A stretch of DNA of 64,000 nucleotides from Guillardia theta CCMP2712 (lineage: Eukaryota; Protista; Cryptophyta): contig NW_005434564.1 in the NCBI RefSeq assembly GCF_000315625.1, positions 163,823 through 227,822 on the forward strand, in the 5' to 3' direction. Numbering within the stretch: the first letter of the stretch is position 1; each line of letters begins with the position of its first letter. Below the pieces are notes generated by a model. It was not told where the DNA came from, made no database searches, and saw only the letters and a program-made list of their open reading frames with translations. The translations under genes and the position numbers were made by a program. Shown here piece by piece: positions 2,411-51,084 of the stretch.

Positions 2411-2640
2411 CCCCGTCGCATGTTTCACCGTTCAACGGCATCAGTGGTTTGTCAAATTTTGACAGGCTTGGGTAAGAGTGGGGAGGAGCCTCTCCCCGAA
2501 TGACACGGCCCGCGGGGCGCGGCGGCGGGCCGGGCCAAGCCTGCCACGCCGGCGGGACGGTACTATACTGATAATGATACGGTCACCGGCAGGGCCGCCG
2601 GCCCGCCCGGGTCGGACAGTGCGGTACTAACTTGAGGTTG

Positions 2641-2899
2641 TGTTCTACTTGAATTACAAAGAACACCGTAGCCAGCAACGAAGCTAAGATGGCACATGAT
2701 GTACAAACCGTTGAACCATCATGATCACATGTACGGTACTCAATATCGGACCCTCGGAGTCTGCCAGTTGCTAAACTTGCTTCAGAGTAACCGTGAACCG
2801 ATGTCCACACAGACAGAGCGGTATCAAAGTTAAGTTAAAAAGCAGTACGAGGACAATCAGGAGAGTATCCATTTGCAAGTTGTGTTGCTGAATCTTGCC
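2641..2899 (+). repeat. Dispersed repeat family B, 5' part, heavily interrupted by micro-insertions
   Basis: Colinear by eye with 43698-43908 (aattacaaagaacac...catgtac...ttgctaaactt...gtccacac...gtatccatttg...gttgctgaatcttgc). Confidence 0.85.
2826..2867 (-). repeat. Short 3' fragment of repeat family A nested inside family B
   Basis: Reverse complement reads actctcctgattgtcctcgtactgctttttaacttaacttt, matching 51334-51372. Flanked by GTATC at 2821-2825 and 2865-2869. Confidence 0.85.
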
Positions 2900-3428
2900 A
2901 ATCATGCGTCGAGGCAAAGCCAATGATTGATTGAACGAGTGCCATGCTGGTAAGTCTACCTCAGGAGGAAAACCGTTCAGTCACCGATCATGGAGTCCTC
3001 ACTCAGCGGCCATGAACACTGACCGTGATGATTCGCATCGCATGTTATGATCGGACCTTCCAGGACCGCCTATCAGTGCAGCGCAGCGCACTGGCCTGCG
3101 CCAGTCAAGTTCACTGGCAACTTGCCCCGACGGTGGCGGGCCGCCCTACAGTACGGTCCGACGGTCGGACGCAAGCATCGGAAGAGCCTTCTCATTCAGT
3201 CGAATGCTACAGAAGACAAATGAGGGGTATGAGAAGAATGAGTGGTATGAGATGATGAAAGAACATAATCTTGACTTGCTTGAAACCAAGAGTTGAAATT
3301 CGTTTACAAATCGTTCGCATTTGAGAGTGCAGCGGATCAAGAATGCAGCAAACTTCGATCTGAAAAGATTTGTATTACAGACAAGAATGCGATTCTTCCT
3401 GCTTCATTGAAGCGTTAACATTCGCGAC

Positions 3429-3659
3429 TTGACATCAGGTTCTGACAGTGAAACAGAGCCCACAAGGGAAGAAACTCAGGAATGTCATTTCGATTGGCTC
3501 GCTGAGTTCAAGGCCCTGAAAAAAGCTGCATCATCTCAAGATTACATGATATACGACCAGAAGTTTGAAAATCATTCCTCGGCATGTTGCCATAGCCCTT
3601 ACGATCGTGGATCCCCCGTGCCGAGATATTTCTCTTCACCAAAGATTGTGCAACGCTGA
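3429..3659 (+). CDS. Possible last exon of a small hypothetical protein
   Basis: Open frame after an acceptor-like ttgacatcag; possible upstream exons from ~3252. No homology recognised. Confidence 0.25.
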   Translation: MTSGSDSETEPTREETQECHFDWLAEFKALKKAASSQDYMIYDQKFENHSSACCHSPYDRGSPVPRYFSSPKIVQR

Positions 3660-4169
3660 TACGTTCTGATTCTGACGAAATGATTTCGACATGCTTTCTT
3701 CGTTGAAATGCACAAACCCCTGTTTTTGCTTGAGAAGTCCTTTCGGGCTGAATGTCAACTTGCCATTCGGATCGGCGTCCTTCTTCGTTTCAAGCTTGAT
3801 CTCACTCAGTCGACGGAACGACGTGAAATTTTGTGGTGCTCCAGATATCTCCTTGCCACTGTACGAGCCCCTTCTCATGCTTGCCATGTGAGCAGACGAG
3901 CGCGGGACGGAGATTTGTTCAAAGGTTGGGACCACGCCGAATGGAGATTCTACCTGCTTGTTTGTATGGGTTGAAGCTAGAATTCTTTGATGCGCGTTTC
4001 GCTGTAAACAACAACCGACCAGGTCCCATGCTGAGTCCTCCATCCTACTAGCTGAGGATCCAACTTGCCCTCCAAGGAACATGCCTGACTTGAGTCCCTT
4101 CTTGCCTCTGCTCGCCATCGCCACCTCCTCTTCTCCTTTCTGCCGCTCTTTTGCATTGATCGTCCCCAT
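3636..4169 (-). CDS. Hypothetical basic protein (~177 aa, may contain an intron)
   Basis: ATG-initiated, non-repetitive ORF directly downstream of a C/G-run zone like those preceding other genes. Confidence 0.4.
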   Translation of the reverse strand: MGTINAKERQKGEEEVAMASRGKKGLKSGMFLGGQVGSSASRMEDSAWDLVGCCLQRNAHQRILASTHTNKQVESPFGVVPTFEQISVPRSSAHMASMRRGSYSGKEISGAPQNFTSFRRLSEIKLETKKDADPNGKLTFSPKGLLKQKQGFVHFNEESMSKSFRQNQNVSALHNLW

Positions 4170-4649
4170 CGCCGTCGCACTGTCAACTAGCTTGCCACCA
4201 CCCCTACCCCCTTCGCACCTTTTTTGCTAAAACTGTACCACACCCTCTACCCCACCCCCCCACCTGGTGGTATCAGTAGAGTTCCTCGGACAACAAGTTC
4301 AAAATGGCGAAAATACAGCCACCACCCCTGTACGACCAACCACCCCCCTCCGGACCACCACTACAAGGTGCGAAGTACTACCAGGAAACCTTGAAGTACC
4401 CCTCCTTTGCGCTATCGTAGTTCACATTGTCGCACGACTGAACTCCTCAGTCGGACCCCCACCCAAGTAGGACATGAGGAAATCAACTACCCCACCCCCA
4501 GTGACTGAATAGTTGACATGTCAAACAGGTCAGGTCATCCGTACCCCAAAAATGACTATCATGCCGGGGCTCCGAGGGGTGGGGGATGTGATGGTGGTGG
4601 TGGTGACAGGGATAGGGGTGGGGGGGGGGGGGGCAGGTACTTCGGTACG

Positions 4650-4826
4650 GAATCTGAAAAAAACTGAAATCATTTGTAAAGAGACGCTTCTGGTACAATT
4701 TTCATTATAAGTATTTTAGGTCGTAGTACCAGGTCTCCTCTAGTACATTGATTTAGCCTGAAGGTTGTTTCTGCTAAAACTCTCAGAGCTGTCACTTATG
4801 ATTTCAAATCTTAGAGGCCAATTGAT
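4650..4826 (+). repeat. Dispersed repeat family B, 3' part
   Basis: Colinear with 43900-44026 (aaactga-atcatttg...cttctggtacaatt...tgtttctgc-aaaac...atgatttcaaatcttag). Confidence 0.8.
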
Positions 4827-5126
4827 CGCTGTAATTTTGAACTTTGGAATAATATTGTCACGCCTCTTTGAGTCTCGGAAAGGGCCATGAAGGCTTTGAG
4901 CCTGTCAATAAACTTCCCGGCGAATCCGATGATCGGCGGCGAGTGACTGACGGGAGTCGGGAGGCCGGCCGGCCGCCGGCCCGGGCGGCCAAGAAGTTCC
5001 GGCTGGCAACTTGAAGTCACTCGAGTCGGCGGCCGCGGCCCGGGCCACCCGGTCCGGCCCCCGGGGCCGCCGGGTGACCGTACCGTACCGTGATCACTGA
5101 TCCGATCCCGGGCGCGTCTGGTCCGG

Positions 5127-5570
5127 GCGCGATACTGATACTATGATACTAGCCGGCATGACGGCGCGGCCCTCCGACTCGGGTCACGGGTGGCAAGTTT
5201 GCGCAAAGGTAAGTCGGAAGGTGAAGTAGTATCATGATCGGATGACTCTGTGAGACACCAGTAAGTTTGGGGAGCTGAGCCGTACTGGCACCGTGCCGGG
5301 CAGCCGCCGCCAGTCACTGAGTGAGCAGTCACTGACTTTCGCCGGCCAAATAGTACGACGGGCCGGGTACCGGCCACCGGCACGCCGTATACGATAGTAG
5401 GATTGGGTTTAGTTCTCGCCGCTGTCGAGTCTCTTGTCGCTGGCAGTATGGCCTGGCGAGTCACTCCGCGACTCAGGGGCCCGGCCAGGGTCAACTGCCT
5501 CCTCTACTCTGACTCTCCTGATTGTACGGTACGGTCCTCGTACTGATTTTTAACTTAACTTTGAGTAAAA
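5127..5570 (+). repeat. Dispersed repeat family A, strongly expanded copy
   Basis: Shares ordered blocks with 50645-50921 and 51085-51379: ggcatg..gcgcgg, gtaagt..gaag, taagtttgggg, gttctcgc, cagggtcaa, ctcctgattgt, cctcgtactgatttttaacttaactttgagtaaa. Confidence 0.8.
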
Positions 5571-5671
5571 GGTCTGTGAAGCAATGCTTTTGAGAGGGGA
5601 CGGGGACGAGGGCCTAGAAGACATATAAACCAAGGAAGCGCAGGGGGAGGAAGAGGAGGAGAGAGAGATAG

Positions 5672-6092: not shown

Positions 6093-7622
6093 ATGAACTT
6101 GTTCTTCCTTCTCACATGCCTCTGTTTCATCATCATTGGAGCTCGGAGTGAACTGGCCCCTGTGGCCCCTCTGCTCCCCCTCCAACTCTCCACCACAGCT
6201 ACAACAAACTTGCTGAGAAGTGACTCGTGCGGGTTTGTTCTAGATTGTGGGGCAGCCTTGAAGTCTCTCAGCTGGGTTAGAGCAGAGGGACGTTGCCAGC
6301 TGTCGTGCCTGTGGAGTAGGAGAGCACCGAGGGGCGGAGCGAGACTGCAGCGACAAGTCGTGAGAGGAGGAGGAGCGACATCGAGCATGTCACAGGGGGG
6401 GAGCAGCAACGTCATCGACGGGAGGAGGATCTCGCAGCTGGTGCAGGAGGAGGTGAAGCTCCACGTGGAACAGCTCAAGAGCGAGCACGGGGTGGAACCG
6501 GGACTTGCGGTGCTGATCATCGGGGACAGGACAGATAGCCAGGTGTACGTGAAGCACAAGGTACTAGCATGCGAGAAGTGCGGTATCAGGTCCGTCAAGG
6601 TGGAGCTGGGCAAGGAGACGACGCAGGAGGAGGCGGAGAGGGTCGTGCGGGAGCTCAACGGCGACTCGTCGATCCACGGCATCCTGGTCCAGCTCCCGAT
6701 TCCAGAGCACCTCGACGAGAAGAAGCTGCTGGCTGAGATCTCCTTTGAGAAGGACGTCGACGGGTTTCACCCTACCAACATCGGGCTCCTCGCCATGCGC
6801 GATCGCAAGGCCCTTGCGCAGCCATGCACTCCCTCGGGTGTAATGGAGATCCTGAGAAGGTCCTNNNNNNNNNNNNNNNNNNNNNNNNNNNNNNNNNNNN
6901 NNNNNNNNNNNNNNNNNNNNNNNNNNNNNNNNNNNNNNNNNNNNNNNNNNNNNNNNNNNNNNNNAAGCGGGGGAATTCGGGGTTTTTTTTTTTGGGGGGA
7001 GAGGAGGAAAAAAAACCACGGGGTTTGGGGAACAAAAAGTTTTTTAACCAGAGAAAAAGGGGGTTTACCGCCCCCAAAAGGGGGGGGGGGGCAAAAGAGA
7101 ACCCCCCAAAAGAGGAGAAATTTTGGGGGGGAAATAAAGGGGTTTTGGTAAAACCGGGGGACGGGGGGGCCGCTCCAGTTTAGAAGGCCCTTGGAGGAAA
7201 AAAAAGGGGGGGGGAAAATTTCCTGAGGAAAAGGGGGGGGAGGGTACACCAACAAAAATGGGGTTCCTGCCCTGGGGGAGTGAAAAGCCGTTGGGGGGAA
7301 CAAAACCCCCCGGGGGGAAAAAAGGAAAATCAAAAGGGGGCTTTGGGCCAGCCCCCCCCCCCCCCCCCCCCCCCTTTCCTTCCTCCTTCCTCGCAGTCTC
7401 CTTTCTCGTAGCAGTTACTCTTTCCCTTTGCTCTCCTCCTGCTTGACCGCCGATCCATTTTTCACTGTCATGTTTGCTCTTGTCCTGCTGTAGCTTGTTC
7501 TCCTCCTTATTTCTACCTGCTCTTCCTCTTCTTCCTCTTCTTCCTCTTCCTCTTCCTCTTCCTCTTCCTCTTCCTCTTCCTCTTCCTCTTTTTCTTCCTC
7601 TTCCTCTTCCTCTTCCTCCTCC

Positions 7623-7653
<31 letters not shown>

Positions 7654-9302
7654 TCTCCTCTTCCTTCTCTTCCTCTTCCTCCTTCTTTTTCTCCTTCTTC
7701 CTTCTTCTCTTTCTTTCCTTCAGCTTCCTCGTCCTGCCCTGAAACAAGGGAGAATTCATGGCCTTCTTCTAACAGCAACGGCAGGGAGAAGGTGGAAACG
7801 AAAGGAGCCAAGGCTGTTGTGGTCGGCAGGTCCAACATCGTCGGCATTCCAATGGCCCTCCTCCTCCTCAAGGCCAACGCTACTGTAGAGGTGCGAGAAG
7901 GAGGGAGGGGAGGAAGAGTGCTAAAGGGCGGGGGAAGGAGAGGAGGAGGCAGTTTAGAAGGAGGACAGGAGGGAGCAGAGAGAGAGGGGGATCAGCAAGA
8001 GATCAAGAAGATCAGCACGAGATCACGGAGGGGAGGAAGAGATCAAGGAGGGGAGGAAGAGATCGAGGAGGGGAGGAAGGGATGAAGTAGGGGAGGAAAA
8101 GATCAAGGAGGGGAGGAAGAGATAGTGTGGAGGAGGACGTCTTGACGTTGACGTTGCAGGTTGTTCACTCTCAGACTCCTCGGGCTGAACTTGAGAGTGC
8201 CGTCAAGTCAGCTGACATCCTCGTCGTAGCGGCTGGAAAAGCTGGGTATGCCTCCTGCTCCTGCTCCTGCGCCTCTTGCTCCTCCTGCTCTTCCTCCTCC
8301 TCCTTCCTCCTCGTCGTCGTCATGCCCACTACCAACACCCGCTCCTGCTCCTGCTCAACTTCCTTCATCCCTTTGCTCTCTTTATCTTGCTGCTGCTTCT
8401 GCTGCTGCATCCATCTCAGGATGGTTCTCCTCGCCTGACTTTGTCTCAGCCTCGTCGATGGCTCGTGGATCAAGGAAGGATCCGTCGTCATCGATGTCGG
8501 CATGAACTCCATACCGGTCCTCTACTGCTCCGCTAACCCCTGCTCCCTCCTCTCCTTTCCTCTTCTCCTTTGCTCAGCCATCTCCTTTCATCTTCATATC
8601 TCCTCCTCTTCCTCTTCCTCTTCCTCTTCCTCCTCCTCTGTTTCCCTTCCCCTCTTCTCCTCCTCTTCTCTGCTTCCTCGCCTCGCTCCACCTCTCTCTC
8701 TCCCTGAGTATCTTTCTGGACAGGACGCGAGCAAAAAGAACGGCTACCGTCTAGTCGGAGACGTTCAGGTCCTCCGACATTCTCAGCCTTTCCTCTTCTC
8801 TTCCCCTTCGCCTCTTCTATCATCTCGCTCCCCCCCTCCCTCCTCCCCTTCCGTTACTCTCCTCCACTTCCCCCCCCTTCTCCCCCCCCCTCTCCCCCTC
8901 CTCGCTCAGCTTGACTCGCCACCAGTATGACGAGGCAGCCAAGAGGGCCAAGCTCATCACGCCGGTCCCAGGAGGAGTCGGTGAGATTCAAACTTGCCTC
9001 CTCTGCCCCCCCTAAACCACTTCTCCTTGTCTCGTTGTTCCCTTCCCCTCTCTTTTTCATCCTCGCTCTCGCTCTCCCTCCTCGCTCTCCCTCCTTGCTC
9101 TCGCTCTCGCTCTCGCTTTCCCTCCTCCCTTCGCTCTTCTCCCTCGCTCTCCCTTCTCGCTCTACTTCTTCATCCATCGACCCCCTCCCCTCATATTTTC
9201 TCAGGCCCCATGACTGTCGCCATGCTCATGCACAACACGGTGACCTTAGCGGCGACCCAGAACAAGGTCCCGGTCCCCATGCTCAAGGGCGACCTGGTTT
9301 GA
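6093..9302 (+). CDS. folD: Bifunctional methylenetetrahydrofolate dehydrogenase/cyclohydrolase, ~7 exons, with N-terminal targeting-like extension
   Basis: Motifs PGLAVLIIG, YVKHKVLACEKCGI, HGILVQLPIP, EKDVDGFHPTNIG, PCTPSG, VVVGRSNIVGIPMALLL, ADILVVAAG, VVIDVG, RLVGDV, ITPVPGGVGPMTVAMLMHNT. Exons ~6093-6859, 7785-7890, 8160-8244, 8450-8516, 8724-8768, 8926-8980, 9205-9302. Confidence 0.95.
6865..6964. other. Assembly gap (100 N), followed by low-quality homopolymer-rich sequence to ~7375
   Basis: N run; the adjacent sequence looks like a degraded read tail. Confidence 0.95.
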
Positions 9303-15857: not shown

Positions 15858-18800
15858 ATGGCGGCAGAAGAGCCTGAGGTGAGGAGGAGGAGGAGGAGGG
15901 AGGAGGAGGAGGAGGAGATGATGATGATGATGACGACGACGACGATGAGGATGAGGACGAGGATGAGGAGGACGAGGATGAGGATGAAGATTGTTGAGGA
16001 CGAGGTGGGGGGAGAAAGAGAAGGAGAATACATAGCTGGGTGAAAAGATTGTAGCAAGGAGGCGGAGGCATGATGATGTTGTGAAGATGATGATGACAAA
16101 CGATTGGACATCGTCAACATCATGTGTTAGGATGTCAGAACATCACCTGGAGAATAATTAAGATTTAGCTTCATGAGATTGCAGCATGACCGAGCTGTCT
16201 CCAAGACATTTGTCGAGTGTTGTGGACTGATTCCGTTCATGTTCGGCGACGGAGGGGGGTTGGGGGACGGAGGGAGTGAGGGAAGTTGTTGCACCGCCCT
16301 ATCACCTTGACTGCGTTGCTGGCTCAGGTCCAAGCCGAAACGGTTGAGCCGGTGCGGAAAGATCTGCCCAAGTTCAACATCCCTGTCCTCAAGGTTTGAT
16401 GCTGAATCACTTCGACCTGCCTTTACCTGACGGCTCCTCCTCCTCCTCCTCCTCCTCCTCCTCCTCCTCCTCCTCCTCCTCCTCCTCCTCCTCCTCCTCC
16501 TCCTCCTCCTCCTCCTCCTCCTCCTCCTCCTCCTCCTCCTCCTCCTCCTCCTCCAGATCATCATTGAAGCGCAAGGACTGCACGGGCTGCGATATGGAGA
16601 TTATCAACGATACAGGTGAATTGTGCTGTGAGGAAGAGGATGGAAAAGGATCGAATCACTTGAGATGTGTTTGTGCTGTACATGAACATTAACGTGGTCT
16701 TGTGTGGTATCTTGTGTCTGACGTGCAACGAGGAATGGAGAGAGCGTGATGGTGGTGTGGAAGAGGAGGAGCTGACGACTATCGTAGACAATACTGCACG
16801 CGAAAGATGCGCAGGCTGCGAAAAGCTCTCAACTTTCTGCATTGGGAGCAGGGGAAGGGGAAAAGCAAATTTATCCAGAAGAAGATCGATATAGATATGA
16901 TCAACGATGCCAGATATCTTTTCATTGTGCTCAACAAGGTGAGATGTGTCCTCCTCTTCCTGCCCTCCCTCCTCCTCCTCTGCCCTCTTGTCGCTTGCTT
17001 GACCCACATGTTCGACCTCTCCCTCCTCTGTTTGTGCTCCCGACGTTCCTCCTCTTCTCCTCGCTCATCGTCTCGCTCACTCCTCACCTCTCCCTCGCAG
17101 GCAGAGCGAGCATGGTCGTACGCGATGCAGCTGCGCGAGGCGCCGGGGGGGCCGGGACGGGAAGTTCATCACGTCAGCCGGTTGCTGGCCAAGGCAGTGA
17201 AGCACTCCGCCTACCTGGAGACTCTCTGCCGGGAGTTTGCGGACGATCGTTCGTGCCTGGAGGCAGAGGTGAGGGAGGAGGAGGACGGGAAGTGGGGATA
17301 GACGAGGGGAGGGGAGGAAGGGGGACAGGAAAGTAGGGGGCAAGGGAGAGGAAAAACGTGGAAAGAGAGGAGGGGAGGAGGGAAGAAGAGGAGAAGCATG
17401 TAGACACTTGAGTTCTCTCCTCAACTCTGTCGCAGGCGTACGCCGCATGGCTAGCAGGGAGCATGCTCCTGGAGAGGGAGGAGTGGGAGCAGGCGCTCGT
17501 GAAGCTGAACCGCTCCCGGACCGTCTACGACGAGCTGAGCCACTCAGCGGAGGGGGTCGAGCAAGCGATGTACAGGAAGAGGTGAGAGCAGCTGGAGTCG
17601 TGCTGGGGCCCTGCTGACTTCCTGCTGAGGGTGGAGGAGATCGAGCCTTCGGTCCGTTACTGTCGTTACAACGTGTCAAGAGAGGTAGGAGGCACATCGT
17701 TTCCTCCTCCTCCTTCTCTTCCTCCTCCTCCTCCTCCTCCTCCTCCTTCTCTTCCTCCTTCTCTTCCTCCTCCTCTTTCTCTCCTCTGTGGGGCTGCGAT
17801 TACACATAAGGAGACATGAAGACATCAAGTCTGTGCTGAGACTTTTCCTCGTTGAAGCATGAGCCTCTTTCTCTTCCTCCTCCCCGTCCCCTTCCCTCCT
17901 TCCTTGCTGCTCCTCACCGTCCCTGCAGGGGGGGTCGAGCAACCTGGAGGAGCAGAGTCAAGTGCTGATGGAGATCGGGAAGTCGGGAGGCGATATGCTC
18001 AAGGGTAAGCTGGAGAAGAGCCTGGCGGAGGCGAGGAAGAAGCAAGCGGCGGCAGCTCATATCCTGCACTGGATGGGGAAGGAGATTTCTGTGGACAACC
18101 CAGCTATCCACCAGCACATCCTCTCAGCAGAAGGGTCGCAGTTCGAGCTGGAGCAGGCGGAGAGTACAGAAGGAAAGCTGGCGATCTACGACAAGATCTT
18201 CATGGCTCTCGAGGACGCGAAGCAGCTCATCAGGGATGATATCTCCAACAACCTCAAGAGGGGGAAGGACTGCGACGACGCCCTCACCGCCTCCCTCCAG
18301 CAGGTCAGGAACATGGTCCAGAGCATCGTCCTCCTCCGGACGAGGGAGCGAGATCTCCTGCTGGTCTCCCAGCTGCAGGAGAAGCTCCAGACCGAGTTCT
18401 TCGCAAACATCGCCGGGGGGAAGGAGGTGCCCAAGAAAGCGACCCGCCCCGAGGACCTCGTGAAGCTCTTCGAAGTCTTGATGCAGGTGGGGAAAACCTT
18501 CCCTCTCTNNNNNNNNNNNNNNNNNNNNNNNNNNNNNNNNNNNNNNNNNNNNNNNNNNNNNNNNNNNNNNNNNNNNNNNNNNNNNNNNNNNNNNNNNNNN
18601 NNNNNNNNTTACCCTCTCCTCCCTCCCTCCCCTCCCTCCCTCCCTCCCTCCCTCCCTCCCTCCCTCCCTCCCTCCCCGAGGCTCTCCCTCCCTCTCTTCT
18701 CTCTCCTCTCCCTCCTCTCTCCTCTCCTCTCCTTCCCTGCCCCCAACTTGTTTCCTCCACCGCTTTGCTCTGTCTCCCCTTACATTCTTTCATTTTGCTC

Positions 18801-20367: not shown

Positions 20368-23300
20368 TCAGCTGAAACCTGAAAACATCGTCAGTCTCTT
20401 CTCTACCTCTCCCCTCCCCTCCTGTCTCACCGAAGCCCTCGAAGCCCTCGCGCACGGCGCTCAGAAGATACTTGGACAGCTGCGGGTGCGAATCAGCATC
20501 AGATACAGGCCAGGCACTCCGGTTCTTCACCTCTTCCTCCGAGCTGTACTCCGGTAGGTCCAGCTGGTTGAAGCAAGTGTGGGATGACGGCAGTCGCTTC
20601 TTGTCACCGCAGCTGCCACCATCGTCAACGCACGTCAGGTGAGGTTGTTCCCTACCGGTGAATGTTGAACTTCTGCGGTCCATTCATCCCTCTCAAGGCC
20701 TTGAAACCGTCCATGGGGACCTGGAGCAACTTCAACCTTCCTCCCCATCTCAACTTGTTCACGGCTCCTTCCTTTCTTCACTGCCCCTCTCCCCTCCATC
20801 GCCTCCTCTCCCCCTCCCTCCCACAAGCTCAGACCTGCGATGTTCCCGTGACGAACTGAAGGAGGCGAGCCAAGTCCTCCTGGCTGAGCGTCTGTACGAT
20901 ATTCCAGAACCACTGGATCTGAGGAGACTCTCTGGTGTAGCTGCCGGACTTCAGTGTCAGAAGGTAGACAGACATCTCAGTCAGCAACATACCCGGTGTA
21001 CTCGGTGTTGAGCCGGAGGTCTTGAACTGCAGGCGCATGGTCACGACCTAGTCTACAGCAGCCGCGCATGCGCTCACCATCGATGGTCGGAAGGCCGCAC
21101 ATGAGGAGCTCGAGCTCCGCGCACGTGAAGATGGAGATGAGGTCAGGGGCATGAGCTGGTGGAAGCCCTCCTTGAACGCATCGATCTGCTCCTTGATGCC
21201 CTTGGTCATCTGCTGCTCCGCCACCAGCTGTACATACCTAAGGAGAAGGGGCGTGAGGGTTCACTAAGAGGATGCTACAGACACTGCTTACTCGTGCTTG
21301 TTCTCCTCTGTTACAGGGACGTTCCTTCCGTTGGGCTTCAAGTCGATGGTCAGCATCTCCCCGAACTGCTCTCGCACGATGCTGAAAGTTTCCTCGAGGA
21401 TGTCGGTGATATCGTTGTTGAGCATCCATCCCAGGTTCCTAAAATACTCCGGATCGATCGACTCCACGTCGGTGTACTCGATCGGCTGATTTAACATATG
21501 TTTGTACATGGACAGCGTGAAGTGGCTGTCAAGAAGCTGCTCATCCCAGATCGCCTTGCCGACTATTTGACCAGCGAACTTAAAGTACTTAAGATGATCG
21601 GGCTGGATCGTGGAGGCAGGATTCGGTTGATACGTCAGACCGTTGGCCGAATGAATGAACAGAGCCTTGTCTGGGTTCAGCATCTGTTTCGAGAGGATGA
21701 GATACCACTCCCTTGTCAGCCCTCCCGCGTCTACTCCCTCCTCCCCGTTGAAGGTGACCGTCAGCCTGCCCTTGAGCTCGTCCGGTTTCCTCAGGACTAT
21801 CTGGTGGAACGAGTCTTCAAACACGTAGTCCCTCCTGACGTTGATCCTGATGGAGTTGTATCGCTGGCTGACGTTGCGCTTCTTCAGCTCAGACCTGAAG
21901 AAGTGCTTCTTGTTGTCGAAGTCCAACAACTTGGGGTATCGGACAAGAGGCGCAAAAGCAATGGAGTGTAACAACGACTTGTCCTGGCGGATATACATGT
22001 TTAGAGTATGCCTGTGTTGTTCGGCGAATGACACGAACTCCTTCACGTTGAGTGCGCTGGGATTTCTGCCAGGCGAGCACTCACCCTCTGCAGCCTTGTC
22101 CACGTCCATTGAGCTCGAAGACTTGCCAGCATTCTTGGATGAGGAAGCGTTCTTCACAGAGTCAGGTGCCTTCACGACCAGGAAGGCCTCGAAGAGAGGT
22201 TGCATGCGACAAAGTGCCGGGGACAACGAGCCATGGCCCGTTGACTTGGTGTTTGACTCCGTCCTCTCCAGCATGGACAGACACTCTCCAAGCAGGTGCC
22301 ACAGGTCTTGGAGCTCGACAGCCTCTCCCAAGGATCTTCTTGAGACTGTGTCGATGAGCATCTCCTGGGTGTTGGGATCTTCAGCGCTCGTATCGCTGGA
22401 CTTTGTCGGCCAAAGGGACCTCAGCATCTTCACCAGCCTGAGCAATTTATAATCTTGCTCCCCGATGAATGTTTCAAGGGACATGTTCTTCGATTCCTTG
22501 CAGTCCCTCAAAAACAGTTCCAGAGCCACCTTCGACTTCTCTCCTTCACCTTTAACTTCTGCAATCAGATGAGAAATGCATGCCACCAGGTTGATAGGGT
22601 TGCACGACAAGCTCTTGAACAGTGAAGTCAACCTTTCCATGCACTTCGACGAGTTCCCTGATGCAGTTAAAGTCTGGGTGAGACAATGCAATTCAAGGAC
22701 ATTGACTTTGGGCATTGAAAACTTTGTTCCTTCAGCCGTGGGCTTGGTCTCTGCCGTTTCTTCCTCCAAGGTCTTTTCTACAAATTGAACAGCTGTGTTG
22801 AGTAGCTGCAAAACCTGCTCCTGCAGTGCAATGCTTTTGGTGGCCGTCTCCGTCGCTAAGAAAGAAATCAGGGATGAAATGGCTTTTTTGTCTGGAGTCA
22901 GGTCTGTCTTGTCTAGGAATTGAAGCTTAGGCATCAAGTGTTTCTGGAAATCCTTGACTACACGATCTTCCAAGAAATCGTCCTTGAGCATTGTTTTGCA
23001 CACTTCATTCTGATACATAGCCAGATGACAAAGGGCTTCAACGGCTCTTCTGCAGATGGTGATTGGAACAAAAGCATCGCTGACGGCATTGTTCGCGCTG
23101 TATCCGTACATCTCATGATGCTTTGAGTTTTGATCGCACGATTGCAGAATCACACTGAGCAAGAACCGAACGGCAACGTCGCGAGTGCCCTCGTGTGCCG
23201 CAATGTGCAACAAAATCTTGTTCATGAGCGCTTTGGTCACGGGTTGAACCAGGAACAGGAGCTTCAAGATGTAAGTGACACTGCCTTCGTCGATAACTTG

Positions 23301-26300
23301 CATCAACTTCTTTGCTTGTGGCTTGCTGGCATTGTTGTTTGCAGCACGAGCAGGTTCTTGGCGAGAGGAGGTATTTTGCGATTGCCTCCGTGACATACCA
23401 AAGCTGTGATGAAGGCTCCTTCCAAAATCGTTCTCCCTCTCCCTCAGCAAGGCTGCTTCAGCCACCAGATGAGGTGGAAGAGTTGCCAAGAATGCGTCGT
23501 CCGAGGTAAGAAGGACTTCTTCTCGCAATTCTTGACTCAGGGTGGCGATGAAGGAAGCATTGTCCATGTCCTGAGAACGAGAGGTGTCCGCTTCCACCGC
23601 GTTGTTCTGCTGCTCCTCCCTCTGATGTTGGCGAATAACATCAGCCTTGCAAAACAAAGTCATTCATTGTTCAGAAGCAGCAAAATAATAGAGTGTTACC
23701 TGGATGTCAGGGGGAAGGGCTGCAAGGAACTCTGGGTCGATAGAGCTCGCCGCTGTTGAGGCGAGTTGTGCAGCAGCATTTCTGTTCATCTGCTGTTGCA
23801 TGACTTCCGCCCTAAGGTCCTCAGGCAACTCTGCCAGAAACGTCGGGTCGATCCCTGCAGAGTCTGCGTCCACGTTCTGAGTGCTTGCACTCGGAGATGG
23901 TTCGTTGGGCTGCACTGCAGACGCGTTGCCGGAAGCAGGCTCTGTAGTGATTTTCTCTGCATCAGCAGCCTCAGATCGGCTTTCAATCTCTGCTGGTCCT
24001 TGTTGCTCAGCAGAAGGGGCGTCCTGCATAGTTTCCGTTGGCATTTCTTGACCCGACGATTCATCTGACTGAAGCGAGAGCTGCAATGCTGCTTGCAGTT
24101 CGTTATCGTCCTCCTCCATGGCGTCCGAACGGTTCGCAATCGACGACGAAAGAGTCACTTCCGAATCCACTTGCTGAATTTCATCAACGGAACGCTCGTG
24201 TGCTGCAAACAAATTTTTAGGAGAATCAGTCAGATACGGATAAATTGATACAAGATGCAGCATCATACCTATTGACATTGTAGAAACATTCCCCCCGTTG
24301 TCTTCCTCCATGTCATTGTCTGCTGAAGAAGTTGCACCTCGCCTGCTTGGATCAGATCCTTCTACTGGGAGTGCGGCATTCCGACTCGTTGGATCCTCGG
24401 CAGCGTTGTTTTCCATCAAAAATGAAGCTAATGTGTCCTCCATCTCTATCGCCATGTTGCGCATGGCCTGGCTAGATCCTCTTCCATCATCAGTCCACCT
24501 GCTAGTTGCACTTGCATTGTTTTCCATGTTCTGCCTTCCCAACAAGTGCATAGCTTGATCCCCAACTAAAACTCGACCCATCGACCGAGATCCAATGCCT
24601 CCAAATATGAGTTCTGTCCTCAATCTGCGCGAAATTCCGCGCTCCGCATTATCTGCACCTTCTCGGTCTCCATCCGAAGCAGAGCTTCTGCTTCGCGTAC
24701 GATCGCCATGCCTTGTCAACAGAGGATGCTCTGACGGAAGGGCTTCATGATTTGGTACAGTATTGCGTCCACCTGGCAAAATTCCTCTTTCAATGAGGGC
24801 TCTGCTTGGGAAGCGCAACAAAGGCATATCATGAAGCGAAGGAATGGCGACCATGTCGTGAAACATTCGTCTGCCACCCATAAAATCGTCCCGATTCCCT
24901 GACATCAAAAAGCTAAATACATGCTGAGGATGGGCGTCTTGATCGTCAACTTCCATACCATTGACGTCGGCAACGTCTACAACCTCGTCTCTGATCAGAC
25001 TCTCGTTTTCAACCAATTGTTCCATAATGTTGTTGAGATCATGCCTTGAGAGGCTTTGCGAGCCAGCATGGTGGTTCAAGATTATCTCCGGGACACTCTC
25101 GCGATTCAAACGAGTCAAGAAAGGCTCTTCTTCTCGGTCTCCTTCCAGGATGGCTTGGTACTCATCATCCTGACCTTGACTATCCCTGTCTTCATCATCC
25201 TCTATGAATCTCTCAAAGCTGTCATCATCAATTGTGTCTTCGTCTTCCTCCTCCTCCTCCTCCTCCTCCTCTTCATCCGAATCTTCTTCATCTGAACCTC
25301 GCATATCATCGTTGACCGAGCCTTGATCATGCATCTCTTCGTCCCGCGAAGCTGAATGATCATTTTCAATCTCGTGCTCCATGTCCATCGATTGATTTTC
25401 ATTCGACAAAGATTGCAGATTTGAACGAGAGTTATCACCATTTCTGTTCCGATCTTGGCCTGTTCCGCTATCGTTGACATTCGAGTCCGAGTTGCCCCCT
25501 TGTTTCTTGGCAGAGGGAACAGATGCCTTATCGCTTTGGTAAGCATTAGCACAGATTACTTCAAGTGGTCTCAAGATCGAGGTTGATGCCCTCGATGCAT
25601 TGGGATGATGGAGATCCATGCTTGCGACTGCTTTACATAAAGCCTGTGGAACTTTACAATCCTGCAAAAGCTTGATCGTCTCTGGAGCTGGTTCGTTTGA
25701 AGTTTGGTTGGGATGAACCTTGGCAGTGACCAAAGTGTTCAGAATATCTGAAATACTCTGCAACATCAGAAGATGACCAGTCATCCGTGATCGCGTCGAA
25801 GAATTCAAAACGCAAACTATTTCTGTTAGAACCTTCTTCCTCACTTCAGATCCTCGAGAAAGTAACGAAATCACCAGAGATGTCGAGCGGCGCGATATGT
25901 CACTGACTTCCTTGATACTTTTCTGTGCATTCTTCCCATTGGAGGGACTGCAATGAGGAAGCAATTCTCTCAGGAGATATTGCACGAAAGTTTCATTCGA
26001 TTTCTGAGAACTGTCCCCCTTAGTCTCTGACGAATCAATCGTATACTTCAACAGCATCTGTGCGCATCCAGGATAAAATTTCACAATGTCTGCCAAATAT
26101 CGTAGGATATTCACGGGAGTAATCGCGCTCAACTCTTCATTTTTTGCTGTAGAAGCAGGCTTTTCACCCTGGGACTTGTCTAGCTGCATGCTCTCTGATG
26201 ATCCGCAACTGGCATCTGCTGTGGTCTTCAACTCACTGCTCTTTTCGATGCTGTGCTCCTGAGGCTGATTCTTAATTCGTGGATCAGCCAATAACTTGTT

Positions 26301-29300
26301 GATAAGCAAAGAGACAATCGTGTTGGTAACTTCTGTCAAATTTCGTGAAGATCCCTTGCCCTTCTGCAAATTTGAAATGGATCCACCAGATGATTGGCGA
26401 TGTAGCTCAGCAGCCACATCATTGTTGGTATAATCTGCAAATCGTGGTCAGTATCGATCAACGCTAACAAAACAATTTACAAAATAAATCACCTTGATGA
26501 GTTTTGTCCTCTTTCTTATCCAAGATTGCAATCAACTTTCTCCCATCTTCATTGACAAGTTTACAGCATGATTTGATCGCTTTGGCGAAGGTATTGGCAT
26601 CTCTTTGAACCAAAGACGCAGACGAACTGAGAAAAGCCTTCAATGTGGGATTCTTCCCATTGTTGCGTGCCATCATTGATGACAGGATTGATCGGATCTC
26701 ACTGACCATGCTCGCTTGCAATGAATGGGAATCTTCTAGAACATGCCTGATGATCGATCCAGTAACAACTGCCTGGCCTTGATACGAAGATCGCTTTGGA
26801 ATGCTGAGCAATCTTTCAACCGCCCCCTCATGAAAGAATATGGAAGCTAAGGAATGATGCCTGGTCAATCGTGCGCAGACGTCCAGTATTGCCTGTAACA
26901 AGTGTGGCTCTGGATCTTTTTGCAACAAACCAATACAAAACCTCATAAGGGTTGCGTGTTCAGATATGACCTCATCATCCTTTGGATCTGCCTTCTCATT
27001 CTGGGCCCCTTGACTTACATCCTCGGTCTTGGATCCCACTTCGCGCAAATCAAGAGCCTTGTTCTTTTCAGTATTCGCCAAGACCTTGTTCAGCACAAGC
27101 AGACAGGAACAAATCCAATCAGCAGGTTTCTGCTCTGCCTCAATTGCAGAGGAGTTGTCACACAAAAACTTGCTTAAGATCTTGAATGATCCAGCGTTGC
27201 TGGCGACCGTGCAAAGATCGGAATTTTCTGAAACCAGAATGGCCAATATCAAGATAAGACGACTTAAACCATCCGGTTTCACGCTTGAATCTTGTATCGC
27301 ATTCAAGATGGATTGAATGAGGCTTTCTTGCTGCTTCTTATCATTCTTGCAAAGCCATGAAAGCATGTCTACGCATGCAAACTCAACTCTGTTTCCAGCG
27401 CCCAAAATACCAACGCACCATTCGACTGCATTGGCCCTGATGTATTCCGACTGATTTGCACGGGACGATTGATCATTGCTTGATTCTTGCACCTTCTCCT
27501 TGTGAGATACATTCGGATCACTGCTATTAGCTGTGACACCTGCATTCTGGCTTTCTGATTGGCTACTTGCTTGATTCATGGAGAGAGCTAGCGCCCTTGC
27601 TATTTCAGATTCTTCGTCTTCAACTCCAATTTCACTGTTCATGAACAGCCATTCAGTTGCATGCTGAATACTGTTTGTTTGTATTACATCCAGTGCCATG
27701 TGAACCCTTCTTTCATCGAAGCCCATTTCAACAAGAGCAGACACAGTTGCAGGATCGTGAGCAAAGCTCCTTTGGGGTTGAGTTGAAGCAGTTTCTGCGC
27801 GCCCTTCAGTAGGATTATTTTCTTCAGGCTTCATCAATAAAGCGTAAATATCTATGACTGAAGAGACCAAAGGTTTCGGCCATAGTTCAGCCGAAGATCG
27901 GATATTTGTCCACAGAGGCATCAACGAGTTGTGCATTTCTACCTTGATGAAAACATTGTGAGACTTATAGTCAAAATTGCTGTTGCCAGGCTGTGAAGAG
28001 CTTCTATTGTTTGATGGCCATTGGGTCTCCAGGACACGCTTACAGAACGAAATCGATTTCACCAGAGCAACACATTTCGCTTCAAACAATTTCTTTTCCT
28101 GTACATGTCGTGTCTCCAAGACTGATTCGACAAGATTTCCAATCAAATTGGTGGCAGCTTCCATCCCTTTTGACGTTATGAAACCTTGCAGCAAGACAGT
28201 GTTCGCGCTGTTCCTAGCTGGTGGCCGCTGCGAATCGCCGAGAAGGAACGGCATCGCTTGACTTCCAAACAAGCACAGACTAGCCGTGACAAGTGAATCG
28301 ACGATTGCACGCGGAACTGAGTCCACATCACGAATCATTGCCACATCAATGGTCAATACTCTCTGCAAAGCCTCTGACATATTCTTAGAAAGAGCTCTTT
28401 CATGAGTAGCATGCTGTGCATTCCTGTCATCTTGCCTCCTCCGACTAGAACTACTCAACGAAGTGCTAAGTCTCACAAACAGGTGTGAGATTGCAGAGGT
28501 CACTTCACTCTTCAAAGACGTACGAGTATTCGTATTTGAGCGGCGTTCGGTCGGCAAGCTTGCCTCTGCCTCCGGGGCATTATCTGACAACCAATCACCA
28601 AGAGGCTCTTCATTCGACTGCCCTTGTGTATCAACAGCAGACCTCGCTCCAGGAGATTCATTTTCCATGGTCTGTGCTTCACCTTTATCAGATTCCACTG
28701 TGTTGGTGTTTGGCTGACAGCTCAAGCGAACATAGCACTCCGCGATATCTCGAATGAGTTTGATACCCCGTTCGTTATCAAGTTCTGCCGCTGTAGAACT
28801 TCCGCGCAAACAACCAAAAATACCGGATAAAAGATTCACATGGATTTCCAAGCTTAAAAGGTCTGAGTCTGGACGTGAATCCGACAACACCGGTTCCATC
28901 ATCACACCTGGCAACGGAATCCTGCTCAAAATGGTATCGAGGAGGCTTTGAGTGCGGCGAATGACTTCTTCAAGTACACTCCCTGAAGAATGAAAGGCAG
29001 TCTTTCCAATTACTAAGATTATGTACTTTCCTGCTTCTGACTTGGAGAAATCCTGTGGGATTTCTCGTGATGATATCAGTTTGAGCACAGCATCTATGCC
29101 TTTGTTTCGAACAAAAGACCTCGCATGCTCAGAAGCTGACATTAAGGGGTCCAAGAGCTTGCCCAAGAACTCAAGAGAACACAAAAGGTACGCTTCTGCT
29201 GTGAGGTTGTTGCTCGCCCTTCCTTCTCGTGTGGTCCAGTGACTACCATCCTGCATTGCATGCTCGTTCGCAATTCTGCCCATGATTATGGGAATTTTGT

Positions 29301-31788
29301 TGGCCATATTTACACATCCTTTCATACAAGCGTCCAACAAGGAAGGATTGTGCCGCATCAATTCTTCCAGTTGATTTCCAAGATGGCACGGTGTCTCTCC
29401 TTGTAAAACTGGAATGGTTCGCTCCGAGCAGATCGAATCCATGAATTTTCCAATAGGTTGCATTTGTTCAAGCAATTGACTTCCAGAGCTTGATAGACAC
29501 AGCGCCCCCATCATGGTAGGAATGACTGATACAGATCCTCGGGAAATGGGAAAACCTTCCGAAACCGCCTTCAACGCAGCCTTGGCAATACCGTTGGAGA
29601 TCACCAATTGGAGGCAGCTTGGTTCCTGACAAACAAAAAAGTTCAGAACGAGCATACTATATAAAAGCGAAAGAAATACTTGGTGTACGAACTCTGTCAG
29701 AAGCCCAGCAGCTTTCTCAAACACAGATGCCCCAAATATCTCATTCCTCTCGAAAATCGTGCAGAGGATTTTCGGCACTTTCTCCCCTGACATAAACTCC
29801 CTCACATCACTTGAGCTTGCAACGGGAGATGCTGCTGAAGAAAGCAGATGTAAAATAGCACCCAGAAGGCGACATCTTTCAAAGTTTTCCTCCAATCTTG
29901 CACGATGTGGGATGAAGGGTACAAAGCATGCTGAGTTGTCGTCGCCTTCCACAGTTTTGACACTTTCTTCTCCCGCGGCATCGCCCTTCGCGTCGACCAT
30001 TTCTGTGTCATTACAAGAAGCGAGATCAAGCAAGGCCTTCACTTCAGCATCTGCTCTGTCAACCAAGATGCTCAAACCATTCATTTCTTTGAAGCTCTGC
30101 TGCATCTCATTACTGTAATTCATCATGACCTCTACTGTCTTTACAGCCAGAGTAATGAATCTTCCCCGCCTAGACAAAGGATTAATGCTCAGATCATCTC
30201 AAAAAGTAATATCAATCACACGTACCTCGAAGCGTGGTCCTGCAACATGGGCAAGATTAAGTGCATGATACCAGCTGAATTCAATGCATTGTTGCCATTA
30301 TTGCTTCCAGAGAACATCCAAGTGAACGCAAGCAGTGCTTCCCCAAATTTCAGGCGTTCAAGATTTGTAACGTTAGCCTTGGTTGGACTGGTGTTGCCTT
30401 CCAAAATCAAGTTTTTGGCCTGTATTAATCAATCAAAGTTCAGAATATTTCAACAGCGGAGAGATCATGATTGACGCACCCTGCGTATCATGGAGGAGAG
30501 TATAACAGCATGGGACGCAGCTGTAGACGCTAGAACAGAGCTCGACTGCTTTGACCTCTCAGACAACAACGCCGTCAACGCTTTCAAAGATAGTGTTTCA
30601 ATATCCAGTGGAAGCAGGTCGTTATCTGGCTGTTGAAGAACTTCAATCAATTCACTGAGACGGGACTCGCTTCCGATATTGGTCATTGCCGACATATTAT
30701 AGACAGATTGGCACTGTGCGAACACCGTAGTTGCCATGATTTGAACACGAATCCACTGCAATCGCTGTTCAAAAGACGTGAAAGCTTGCGCCATCCTAAT
30801 TCTAGTTTTCAACGCAAAGTGACTGTCATCTGGCACTTTGTATTCCGACATGATCTTCTGAAATATGTCCTCATCCGAAGCAGATTGATCTTTGATATCC
30901 ATAAGGATCGAAATAGGACCTTCGTCTGCAGAAGGATCAAACCTTCAAAAAAGCATTTGGAATTAGCTCTTACCATCATTTTCATTGAGGTCGCTTTGCA
31001 TGCGGTAAAAGCTCATTTTCAAAAAAGTGCCCTATGTTCCAAGTCATTCACAATTGGTGATGGAAATATGTCAAGGAGAGGATTGAAGTTTGAAAAAGTT
31101 CAGAAGGAAGCGAACCTGAGGTGAGGAGTTGGAAATGGCTTGAAGTATTGTTAGGGAGTTATCCTGCGAACAGAACGACGAAGATGCCAACGAGCTGAGT
31201 TTGGTCATAAACTCGCTCTCGCTCACTATCTGTCTTGTCGAACGGGGTGTCGCGAGGACTGAAAGAACTTTCAACACCCCCATAATGATGTCACAATTTC
31301 TATGTTCAATCAAGCGCTTAAGATGCTGCCATAATGTATGAGTTCGAGATCAGATGGAATCAAGCAATTCTTACCTCATAGGAATTGTAGACCTGCCTGT
31401 TGCCACAGTTTTCCAAAATTAGCCGAGTGAACTTCAAGACACTGACGATCAAGTCTTCGGAGGTGAACTCAGAACCAAGGAACCCATCAAACAGATCCAG
31501 GATACGAGACCACTGCAACAGATCGCCCTTTGCACATTTCAATAGGCTATTTGAAAATTCGTATGAATTACCTTCTCATATGGCCACGGCGCGTCCATTT
31601 CAAGTACATAATTCATGACTTTCAGAAGCTCCGCTGGTTTGTTCTGAAATTTCTCGATTTGTCGTTGGATGTCATCCAGACAAGAAGGCTGTTGCATATT
31701 CGTCAGACGATCAAGTAGAGAGAGGAATCATTCGAAGCATTACAAGAAGCGGCAAAGGACGCTTTCTCTTCGCGGTGACGGGAGCCAT
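20368..31788 (-). CDS. HUWE1: Giant HECT E3 ubiquitin ligase, HUWE1/Tom1/UPL1 family
   Basis: N-terminal WPYEKGDLLQW...LKFTRLILENCGNRQVYNSYE (DUF908-like); UBA (LVEMGFDERRVHMAL...ATEWLF); UIM-like EIARALALSM; acidic tract; UBM repeats (IDPTFLAELPEDLRAEV, IDPEFLAALPPDIQ); HECT domain (LDFDNKKHFF, FNGEEGVDAGGLTREWY, LLQFVTGTS, LPSSHTCFNQLDLPEY, EGFGFS*). Confidence 0.96.
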
Positions 31789-33154
31789 ATTACAAGGCGC
31801 CTGTAATTGCAAAGCAGCACATGACCAGATTAAGTGATGAGCTTGCAAACCTAACATTTTCGTACCTTGACACACTAGAAGATATATGAGAGACTGGCCA
31901 AGCACCACTTTTCACCTGCAATGTTGGGTTAGTACGCACCACCAAATGAATTGGTCTGCAAGCGTCTAGAAAATGAATCTCAAAGCCAATACATACGAGA
32001 CAATGACAGACAGATTATTCAGTATATCACGATCTTGTGGAAGACAATCATAGCAGATGTCAGACAGGAAAGGGGGGAGAAGGAGGGGGAACAGACTGAC
32101 ACGGCGAAGTCACGCGACAAGTCCCCACCAACAACATGGTGCGGTGGGGAAACAAAGGCATCTTCTAAAGGATTGAGATGCATCAAGGAAACTGCGATTG
32201 AGGGAGCATTCGACTCTTGCCATGAAGTGGGAATAGATAAGAGGAGGAGCTTGGGAGCGAGGAGCGCATACCACAACGAACGCTGGGCTGAACAAAGTTG
32301 GAGCATGGTGCCAGGACAGGTGTGAAGTAAGGGTGGGAGAAAGATGGCGTGTTTTAAAACATGTTATAAACTTTTGCTACGGGTCAACACGATGAGAAAA
32401 ATACTTGTAGAGTTTTAAAACATCCAACTCGAATTGGAATTGTGCAGGGTGAATTTTCGATCTCAGGTTGAAAATAAAGGGACAAAATCAGTTATATGTG
32501 ATCGAAATTCGCTAGGAGGTTGCTATCATTTGGGCGACATTGTCCAAATTCAAGCAAGAAATCCCCAAATGCAAATACTTTTAGTAACAGTACCAACTCT
32601 CCCAGGAATCACTCACGCATTATAGAGAGCTTTCAAAAATCGTGACATAACAAGAGCTCATCTGTAGTGCATTCCTACCTTGGATCGTGAATATAAATAT
32701 TTTTGTGGATGTGTGGTATGCAAATAACTAGCATAGATACAAAATGTTGTATATTCGGTAGAGATTATAATATGTGGTTTTAAAATAGTAAGTTGAGGCT
32801 TTTCAGATTCGCCTCAGAGCTTTTCATAGAAAGTTTGCCAAGGACACCGTTTACCTCTCGGAGTTTTGAAGGTGGGTGGGGTACTTTGCAGATTTTGTAT
32901 GGTGGGGGTAGTATCCTGTGTCTCAATATCAGATGTAACTACTGGTAAAAGGTAGGGTGAAGACCAACAATTGGTCAAATATAGGGTAGGGTACAATATC
33001 CCGAGTTCTCAACAAAGGAGGGTGGGGGGTGGTAGATTGTCGGAATGGAATGGAGACAAGGCGAAATCCAGTAGGGAGCAGTGAAGGTAGCATGCAAGAC
33101 AGGAGGAGAGTTAGGATGTGAGACCATTCACAAGACTGGAGATTGAAAAGGAAT

Positions 33155-40669: not shown

Positions 40670-40703
<34 letters not shown>

Positions 40704-50921: not shown

Positions 50922-51084
50922 AGCCAGGAAGATTTTCAAAGTCACTAAGTTCGTCAGCCGCGCCCGGAGCCGCCGCGGCTGGGCCGCCCGGCGCCCCCCC
51001 GGGCCGCGGTCATCCGGGAGAGTCCGGCGCGGGTGCTTCACTGACTCCCGTCACCCGTGCCACGTGACCGTGCCGCTGGCGGCC

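Follow-up and report, generated by a model that had tools for sequence, protein, structure and literature searches.

In a 64,000-nucleotide stretch of the Guillardia theta CCMP2712 genome (the window; C110:163823-227822 of an assembly of 87.1 Mb in 669 contigs), a short and stereotyped insertion scar was identified. In the canonical event, a 3-bp target X becomes X-C-X'-G-X, where X' is the reverse complement of X, with a net gain of 8 bp, and X can be any triplet. The scar is found within copy A (2641-2899, plus strand), a decayed fragment of a repeat referred to here as family B that carries 12 derived micro-insertions plus deletions. Copy A is an old, non-coding remnant of a TA-flanked DNA transposon, and the scars are tentatively read as the product of a mutational process acting across the genome, for which transposon excision is the likeliest cause; this reading as a whole is given somewhat less than an even chance. 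Together with the window, which is the only unbiased part of the sample, further genomic loci from other contigs (designated by L-numbers such as L002 and L044) bring the sequence in hand to 195 kb, approximately 0.2% of the genome, and all rates given below rest on these 195 kb.

Micro-insertions in copy A

Copy A comes from the interior of a 1.13-kb element with TA flanks and terminal inverted repeats (TIRs) and has since decayed. An earlier note on this sequence compared it with copy B (43698-43908, plus strand), a family-B fragment with no micro-insertions, and reported about ten small insertions in copy A, eight of which were quoted as strings. All eight strings are present at the coordinates quoted. 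Since a pairwise MAFFT alignment of copies A and B misplaced the middle of the fragment, a manually curated alignment with copy B and 12-13 more family-B copies located on other contigs was used instead. Twelve private insertions of 1-14 nt were counted in copy A that are missing from copy B and from the 12-13 other copies. Because these other copies lack them, the 12 pieces are insertions in copy A and not deletions elsewhere, which is the polarity that the earlier note had assumed. Copy A additionally contains some deletions and a replaced middle that holds a 43-nt piece (2824-2866, plus strand) of a high-copy, retroposon-like repeat, repeat A.

The insertion GTTGAACC at 2710-2717 generates the one perfect scar of copy A, AAC-C-GTT-G-AAC at 2706-2716, with the 8-bp gain. 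The insertion CGTGAAC at 2792-2798 generates one near-perfect scar, AAC-C-GT-G-AAC at 2789-2798. Three others are variants of the same form. TGATCA (2722-2727) produces TCA-TGA-TCA at 2718-2727 with no tip bases, CAAGTTG (2876-2882) produces TTG-CAA-G-TTG at 2873-2882 with the C tip absent, and GGTAC (2735-2739) produces GTA-CG-GTA at 2731-2739, a 5-bp class composed of the 3-bp duplication plus C and G without inverted filler. The insertion CTTGA (2648-2652) is situated between two A's, and two further repeat copies have gained the identical string at an A|A position. A 14-mer (2748-2761) and CCAG (2764-2767), which are possibly nested events, hold the odd palindromes CTC-G-GAG and CTG-C-CAG within 2748-2767. 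The remaining insertions are CCGTAGC (2666-2672), a single G (2691), GATG (2698-2701) and GCTT (2779-2782).

Inserted strings were scored for the slide of the direct duplication and for the best palindromic stem against 1000 shuffled and 1000 permuted controls. For copy A alone, the direct duplication had a mean slide of 2.55 versus approximately 0.7 in the controls, with 0 of 1000 reaching it, while the inverted-filler excess was matched in 227 and 137 of 1000 controls and is not significant. The claim of the earlier note that most of the insertions share one structure goes too far for copy A, in which about half of the 12 match it no more than loosely.

The interval 2454-4002 is covered without mismatch by contigs of a separate study from 2011, for which no indel is listed in 2641-2899 (one contig gap was not placed), and 2026 raw reads from chromatin immunoprecipitation sequencing (ChIP-seq) at a depth of approximately 8-10x gave no indel call in copy A. 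Since both data sets reproduce them, the insertions of copy A are not an assembly error. No polymorphism was seen in copy A in the reads, all runs of which may come from one strain. Explanations by an assembly or sequencing artefact, by chance or by deletion from the remaining copies may therefore be set aside as having a negligible probability. While the palindrome excess of copy A taken alone would be compatible with chance, the independent data reproduce the sequence, the outgroup copies polarize the events as insertions, and the motif is enriched 10-20x with composition-matched internal controls, as described next.

A fixed insertion grammar

The exact 11-mer X-C-X'-G-X with an X of three nucleotides occurs 19 times in the window against 1.77 expected (maximum of 8 in 200 local shuffles) and 87 times in the 195 kb against 4.3-5.8 expected. 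The 87 canonical 11-mers have all distinct contexts, use 44 different X and are spread over 32 of the 44 sequences, and the density of perfect scars in the sample is approximately 0.3-0.45 per kb. When arm length and duplication length were scored separately, a single peak was observed at 3 and 3 (52 vs 4.0), with other combinations near background. With other lengths of X, the motif was enriched only 2.6x at two nucleotides and was found 3 times against 0.45 at four and once against 0.1 at five. The spacers are constrained as well. Across the 195 kb, G..C was found 19 times, C..C 22 times and G..G 29 times, and each pair containing A or T was at approximately 1-3x expectation. The two tip bases are mostly complementary to each other (C..G 87 plus G..C 19, versus 51 mixed). 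The grammar proposed in the earlier note is therefore real, strand-symmetric and specific in its C then G, its 3-nt duplication and its 3-nt inverted arm. The note had also named two outcomes that would count against it, namely a predominance of deletions in the other copy and plain slippage without an excess of C/G spacers or inverted filler; neither was observed.

The triplets that serve as X occur in the proportions of the background trinucleotides, and around them no motif was seen, except that the flanks are GC-richer (60% vs 53%). The product of an event is set by its target sequence: AAC was converted to AAC-CGTTG-AAC twice, in copy A and in a repeat-A copy at 51205-51379, and GAA was converted to GAA-CTTCC-GA in two unrelated copies. 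Short relatives of the canonical scar also occur (X-CG-X, X-X'-G-X and X-C-X'), and the 5-bp class represented by GTA-CG-GTA in copy A is found as GGC-CG-GGC in L012, L030 and L002. When the insertions of copy A and repeat A were pooled (47 events of at least 3 nt), both scores exceeded the controls, the stem with 2.89 versus 2.0-2.25 and the duplication with 1.6 versus 0.6-0.7 (0 of 1000 for both). The odd palindromes among these pooled insertions have a C or G at the center in all but one case. Removal of the first layer of canonical motifs (138) exposed a second layer of 5, which, given the poor design of this control, amounts to "a few" at most.

The C and G spacers do not derive from the bases that neighbor X. 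In the window, 1 of 19 scars has X preceded by C and followed by G, and in four polarized cases the neighboring bases are A/C, A/G, G/G and T/T. This observation bears on replication template switching, either by a four-point model or by quasi-palindrome correction, from which hairpins and inverted copies of nearby sequence are known to arise (PMC5453318, PMC8794818) and which could produce the inverted and direct copies together. Some of the non-canonical events are apparent local inverted copies without a duplication, as template switching would produce. The short template-switch mutations described by Loytynoja and Goldman are likewise local inverted copies; however, all of their bases are templated, and the C and G of the scar are not. 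A template switch would need the C and the G to be present originally, which is true of only one window scar and of none of the four polarized cases, and the fixed 3-nt length is left unexplained. Because the spacers are untemplated by their neighbors, pure template switching is ruled out for the canonical class. As a general account of the scars it is very improbable, and would explain a minority of events at best.

Repeat families carrying the insertions

Family B is a non-autonomous TIR element of 1.13 kb with TA flanks and TIRs of approximately 48 bp that start GGGGGCTTATGGGCGCC (ends GGGGGC...). At least 12 further copies are present on other contigs, including those of L032-L038 (e.g. 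L033:890-2022), and the copies are 85-97% alike. Young copies have acquired private canonical 8-bp insertions, GAG-C-CTC-G-GAG in L044 and GGT-G-ACC-G-GGT in L039, which independently confirms the polarity of the insertions. In seven near-full copies compared by eye, small insertions outnumber deletions, a weaker comparison than the repeat-A count given below. Partial copies introduced many spurious "private deletions" into the alignment and were not used.

Repeat A is approximately 150 to more than 220 nt in length, with one fixed end (CTTTACTCAAAG...) and another that is variably truncated. The fixed end reads CTTTACTCAAAGTTAAG..., and many copies run past 150 nt (...CCCCCAAACT TAACTGATACC...). 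From a read depth of 40-90x single copy, there are roughly 100 or more copies, many of which are 98-100% identical. Repeat A probably represents the 3' portion of an active retroposon of the type without long terminal repeats (non-LTR). Pristine copies exist alongside others that are laden with the same kind of insertion as copy A.

Over 1,828 aligned bp of young repeat-A copies, 44 insertion events (244 bp), 32 mismatches and 3 deletions were counted using symmetric gap costs and leaving out the part of the consensus used for locus selection; such insertion counts are blind to large deletions, and some scars common to two copies may be inherited and not independent. Three of the copies are on the minus strand of the window. 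The copy at 5399-5569 has 8 insertions (45 bp) and 9 mismatches, the copy at 50745-50921 has 10 insertions (27 bp), including GAA-C-TTC-C-GA, and 6 mismatches, and the copy at 51205-51379 has 5 insertions (25 bp) and 3 mismatches. The last of these includes the canonical AAC-C-GTT-G-AAC, which reads GTT-C-AAC-G-GTT at 51269. Insertion load climbs with mismatch load (rho 0.46, p 0.024). It is also higher in copies whose flanking sequence is denser in scars (rho 0.46, p 0.023), and exposure therefore differs between regions. Hot spots along the repeat-A consensus were not supported (73 vs 71 close pairs), though three sites looked recurrent by eye.

Pieces of 20-49 nt from the repeat-A fixed end were observed within other repeats, at 2824-2866 in the window, in L044 (alignment column 127) and in L027; one such piece, of 49 nt and similar to that of copy A, lies within another family-B copy. 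The piece in copy A has an apparent flanking duplication of 3-5 bp (GTA/GTATC). These short pieces may represent either heavily truncated retro-copies or filler DNA that was captured.

With such a repeat present, abortive retrotransposition was considered as a source of the scars. According to this explanation, repeat A would nick its target with a 3-nt stagger, complementary DNA synthesis (strand start CTTTACTC) would stop after the first base, a C, and template jumps between the tails would give the inverted 3-mer. The high copy number and identity of repeat A, its one fixed end and its variable truncation are in keeping with this proposal, as are the short pieces inserted in other repeats. 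The fixed end does start with a C on the first-made strand, a coincidence that would be met one time in four, and an exact 3-nt limit would follow from the copying of a 3-nt single-stranded overhang. X-C-X'-G-X can, however, be derived in this manner only if the template is switched twice and one of the switches lands on an identical end, and the repeat-A piece in copy A is itself flanked by an apparent duplication of 3-5 bp. Abortive retrotransposition is for these reasons considered improbable.

Distribution of the scars

The scars of the window are situated in GC-rich intergenic islands at 2.4-5.6, 12.7-13.3, 43.2-43.4, 50.5-53.3 and 57.0-57.1 kb. The island at 2430-5620 contains five 11-mers of the C..G type (2706, 3156, 4924, 5138 and 5312) and three with other tip orders (CC, GG). 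The island at 50400-53300 contains seven of the C..G type (50507, 51080, 51269, 51695, 51798, 52506 and 52934) and four with other tip orders (CC, GC, GG). Long open frames are scar-poor, with 12 of 30 scars, though 66% of the window is open. An AT-richer stretch with few open frames at 30000-34000 (GC 43-45%) has zero canonical scars; this stretch may be intronic, which would mean that introns are spared. From the rates observed, it is plausible that intergenic DNA is built from such scars.

This distribution is also relevant to a break that occurs independently of any mobile element. In this case a host nuclease, maybe a domesticated PIF/Harbinger-like protein of the HARBI1 type with a DDE domain, would cut open intergenic DNA with a 3-nt stagger. 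Fill-in would follow, DNA polymerase (Pol) theta or a Pol X enzyme would add one untemplated C to either 3' end and snap back to copy 3 nt, and the tails would pair by 3-nt microhomology. Such a break shares all of the sequence facts with the excision reading, and no resident element was found in 195 kb. The crowding of scars into GC-rich intergenic islands, with none in the AT-richer non-open-frame sequence at 30-34 kb, and the relation of insertion load to flank scar density described above are in agreement with it. The genome has 17 matches to DDE_Tnp_4, at least one of which lies in a 3.2-kb duplicated, gene-like segment that is not a TIR element, and the PIF/Harbinger family cuts with a 3-bp stagger. 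Larger templated fillers are present at the same kind of site, both as repeat-A pieces (copy A, L027, L044) and as tandem duplications, and templated fillers are typical of polymerase-driven end joining. The scars left by Pol theta, however, are usually accompanied by deletions and have variable microhomology, which does not resemble a fixed gain of 3+1+3+1+3. A 1-nt loop would be sterically poor for a free snap-back, and action of any DDE gene as a nuclease on host DNA is unsupported. Taken together, an element-independent break is a doubtful explanation, somewhat on the unlikely side.

Proposed excision mechanism

The excision reading would begin with a two-ended break in which each end carries a copy of X, as expected from the 3-bp staggered target cut made by an integrating element. 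Each end would be a fold-back or hairpin with a 3' strand composed of X, one extra C at the tip, and X'. Opening on the 3' side would leave tails of X-C-X' on the top strand and X'-C-X on the bottom strand. These tails match in their terminal 3 nt because both copies of X are identical, and their annealing followed by fill-in would give X-C-X'-G-X. It follows from the fold-back scheme that the inverted arm has the length of the duplication. The variants may be accommodated by small departures from the same path: tails without a fold-back would give X-CG-X, loss of a tip would give X-X'-G-X and similar forms, and opening on the opposite side would flip the tip to give the C..C, G..G and G..C classes. 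The likeliest source would be a cut-and-paste element with a 3-bp target site duplication and 5'-C...G-3' ends, with its first nick made one base inside the element.

Several steps of this scheme have precedent. The transposases of hAT, Transib/RAG and MULE form hairpins on the flanks, palindromic flank copies are found in Ac/Ds footprints, mariner-type footprints keep both duplications along with the element end bases, and microhomology derived from the duplication steers repair (PMC5499845, PMC4561436). Two features of a hairpin footprint are present in the scars: both target duplications are kept, as seen from the 3-bp direct duplication of the polarized insertions, and palindromic nucleotides copied from the flank (the inverted 3-mer) lie between them. 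With respect to the excision of a C...G-ended element put forward in the earlier note, the hairpin model with a 3-bp duplication does reproduce X-C-X'-G-X; intact TIR elements having such ends and a matching duplication were searched for in the 195 kb and none was found.

The proposal has a number of points against it. The required rate would be very high, with scars at least as frequent as substitutions in the copies of repeat A. We know of no superfamily that has been described as nicking first at one base inside the element and then forming a flank hairpin. About half of the polarized insertions match the grammar only loosely, and among them are simple tandem duplications and captured pieces of repeats. 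A search of the 195 kb for TIR pairs (10-mer and 8-mer) with a 3-bp duplication revealed neither an excess nor a recurrent family, and exon-wise scans of the genome with Pfam profiles, which have limited sensitivity, gave no CACTA, RAG1/Transib, hAT or Zator transposase. The only superfamily detected that has a 3-bp duplication is PIF/Harbinger, whose target is normally TWA, and X is unbiased; moreover, a 99.9%-identical pair of PIF-type segments on contigs C13 and C16 has neither a TIR nor a target duplication.

If the agent is left unspecified as to type, the scars could be attributed to an undescribed, highly active, sequence-independent break-and-repair system, being either a new hairpin-forming cut-and-paste element (with a 3-bp duplication and its first nick one base inside) or a domesticated nuclease with a 3-nt stagger. 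Such a system would leave a fixed scar at a rate at or above that of point substitution, strongly favor insertions, and be one of the main sources of the palindrome-rich GC islands that separate genes. This attribution is possible and is held with a confidence that is well short of even.

Search for a responsible agent

The genome scans gave the following for individual transposase families. Transposase_21 had 0 matches, which is weak evidence since control genomes also had 0, and the hAT dimerization domain had no match within the limits of the exon-wise scan. MULE was represented by six weak matches. The 17 matches to the PIF/Harbinger-type DDE_Tnp_4 include several open frames of 450-500 aa.

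The PIF-type pair consists of a 3.2-kb segment with an open 454-aa DDE frame, one copy being in L063/L068 (C13:53602-56814) and the other in L064/L067 (C16), and it looks like a duplicated gene segment. A third copy (89%) on contig C11 adjoins a masked run of N. The PIF-type segment was considered as a source of the insertions from its right end, which reads ...CAAG like the CTTG/CAAG fillers; its left end has no TIR or duplication, and the resemblance was put down to coincidence.

Among the long open frames of the sampled loci, a Pfam analysis identified host genes and a single Ty3-type integrase, but DNA transposases were absent. The integrase (L043:1798-3057, minus strand) has integrase zinc-binding, rve, Tf2-type SH3 and chromodomain matches and is of the Ty3/Gypsy chromovirus type.

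Comparison with known systems

The footprints of Ac/Ds and other hAT elements resemble the scar in that both duplications are kept with palindromic nucleotides copied from the flank between them (PMC4561436, PMC5499845). They differ in three respects: the duplication is 8 bp versus 3 here, their central base complements a base of the flank, whereas that of the scar is a constant C or G with no origin in the flank, and the nick is made one base outside of the element, which is the mirror image of the nick one base inside that is modeled here. Odd hairpins are another point of likeness, arising in hAT elements through a 1-nt offset of the first nick, as in Hermes.

The canonical footprint of Tc1/mariner and Sleeping Beauty, TA-C(A/T)G-TA, is similarly composed of a duplication, the element end bases C...G and the second duplication, with one dominant product since the overhangs pair. 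Its target is always TA and its filler comes from the element, whereas in the scar X is any triplet and the filler is an inverted copy of the target. The TA duplication of Tc1/mariner is thus absent from the scars; family B is TA-flanked but has ends of GGGGGC....

CACTA/EnSpm (CMC) elements share with the scar a 3-bp duplication of arbitrary sequence and ends that begin with C and finish with G. Unlike what would be expected of a resident CACTA family, there was no Transposase_21 match in the genome and no CACTA...TAGTG-ended element was seen in the 195 kb. To our knowledge, the chemistry of CACTA excision has not been established.

In V(D)J coding joints and Transib excision, flank hairpins that are opened off-center give P nucleotides, and the additions are GC-rich. 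In contrast to the scar, the RAG/Transib hairpins are even and lack a tip base, Transib duplicates 5 bp of its target, and the Pfam scan for RAG1 was empty. More generally, the duplication lengths of the hairpin-type superfamilies (8, 5 and 9-10 bp) are not seen in the scars, which peak only at 3 bp. Among the transposases cited in the earlier note for excision through hairpin intermediates, hAT (8 bp) and Transib (5 bp) are thus at odds with the 3-bp duplication. PIF/Harbinger elements have the right duplication length of 3 bp; their TWA preference is not reflected in X, which follows the background trinucleotides.

Pol theta end joining also leaves templated fillers at breaks, which are short and may be inverted or direct, and it makes use of microhomology. 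Its scars are heterogeneous and usually involve a loss of bases, whereas those described here have a fixed 8-bp gain, constant C and G bases, and 44 insertions versus 3 deletions.

From these comparisons, the scar merges a feature of Tc1/mariner footprints (end bases with both duplications) with a feature of hAT footprints (palindromic flank copies), and has a duplication length that fits neither of them, nor Transib. Its fixed form, density and insertion-dominated spectrum are unusual among known break and excision scars with P-type nucleotides. A search of the literature, which was incomplete in its coverage, found no account of an X-C-X'-G-X signature in cryptophytes or elsewhere.

Other features of the window

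Three consecutive long open frames on the minus strand at 21288-30177 contain DUF913, UBA, UBM and HECT domains, and from these domain matches the region looks like a gene for a HUWE1-like giant E3 ubiquitin ligase. A TylF-type (macrocin O-methyltransferase-like) open frame at 57194-58384 (plus strand) overlaps one arm of a 450-nt inverted repeat whose arms (57948-58397 and 62277-62726) are 98% identical and 3.9 kb apart. This arrangement is possibly an inverted duplication of a bacterial-type methyltransferase gene. Low-complexity runs composed only of purines or only of pyrimidines (GAGGAG, CAGGAG, CTCCCT, GACA) with extreme strand skew are found at 1-1240, 7350-7720, 16400-16590 and 38100-40800, partly in open frames. 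An Rfam scan of the whole window gave no matches. In the genome, the nuclear phycoerythrin alpha-chain family, which is a hallmark of cryptophytes, had 23 matches.

Implications

A stereotyped 8-bp scar that can be read from genome sequence serves as a fingerprint of the break chemistry that made it, here consisting of a stagger of 3 nt, a fold-back that carries a single base at its tip, and joining by microhomology. Most organisms have a deletion bias. The sampled neutral repeats are the opposite, with insertions that exceed substitutions (44 vs 32) and greatly exceed deletions (44 vs 3). The scars thereby provide a concrete route to the growth of non-coding DNA that is rich in palindromes and in GC. 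If a transposon makes them, its cleavage geometry would be one not known to be described for any superfamily and its rate of insertion and excision would be exceptional. If no transposon is involved, the scars would suggest that this alga, which has a secondary plastid and publicly available ChIP-seq and RNA sequencing data, possesses an unknown nuclease and repair pathway of its own.

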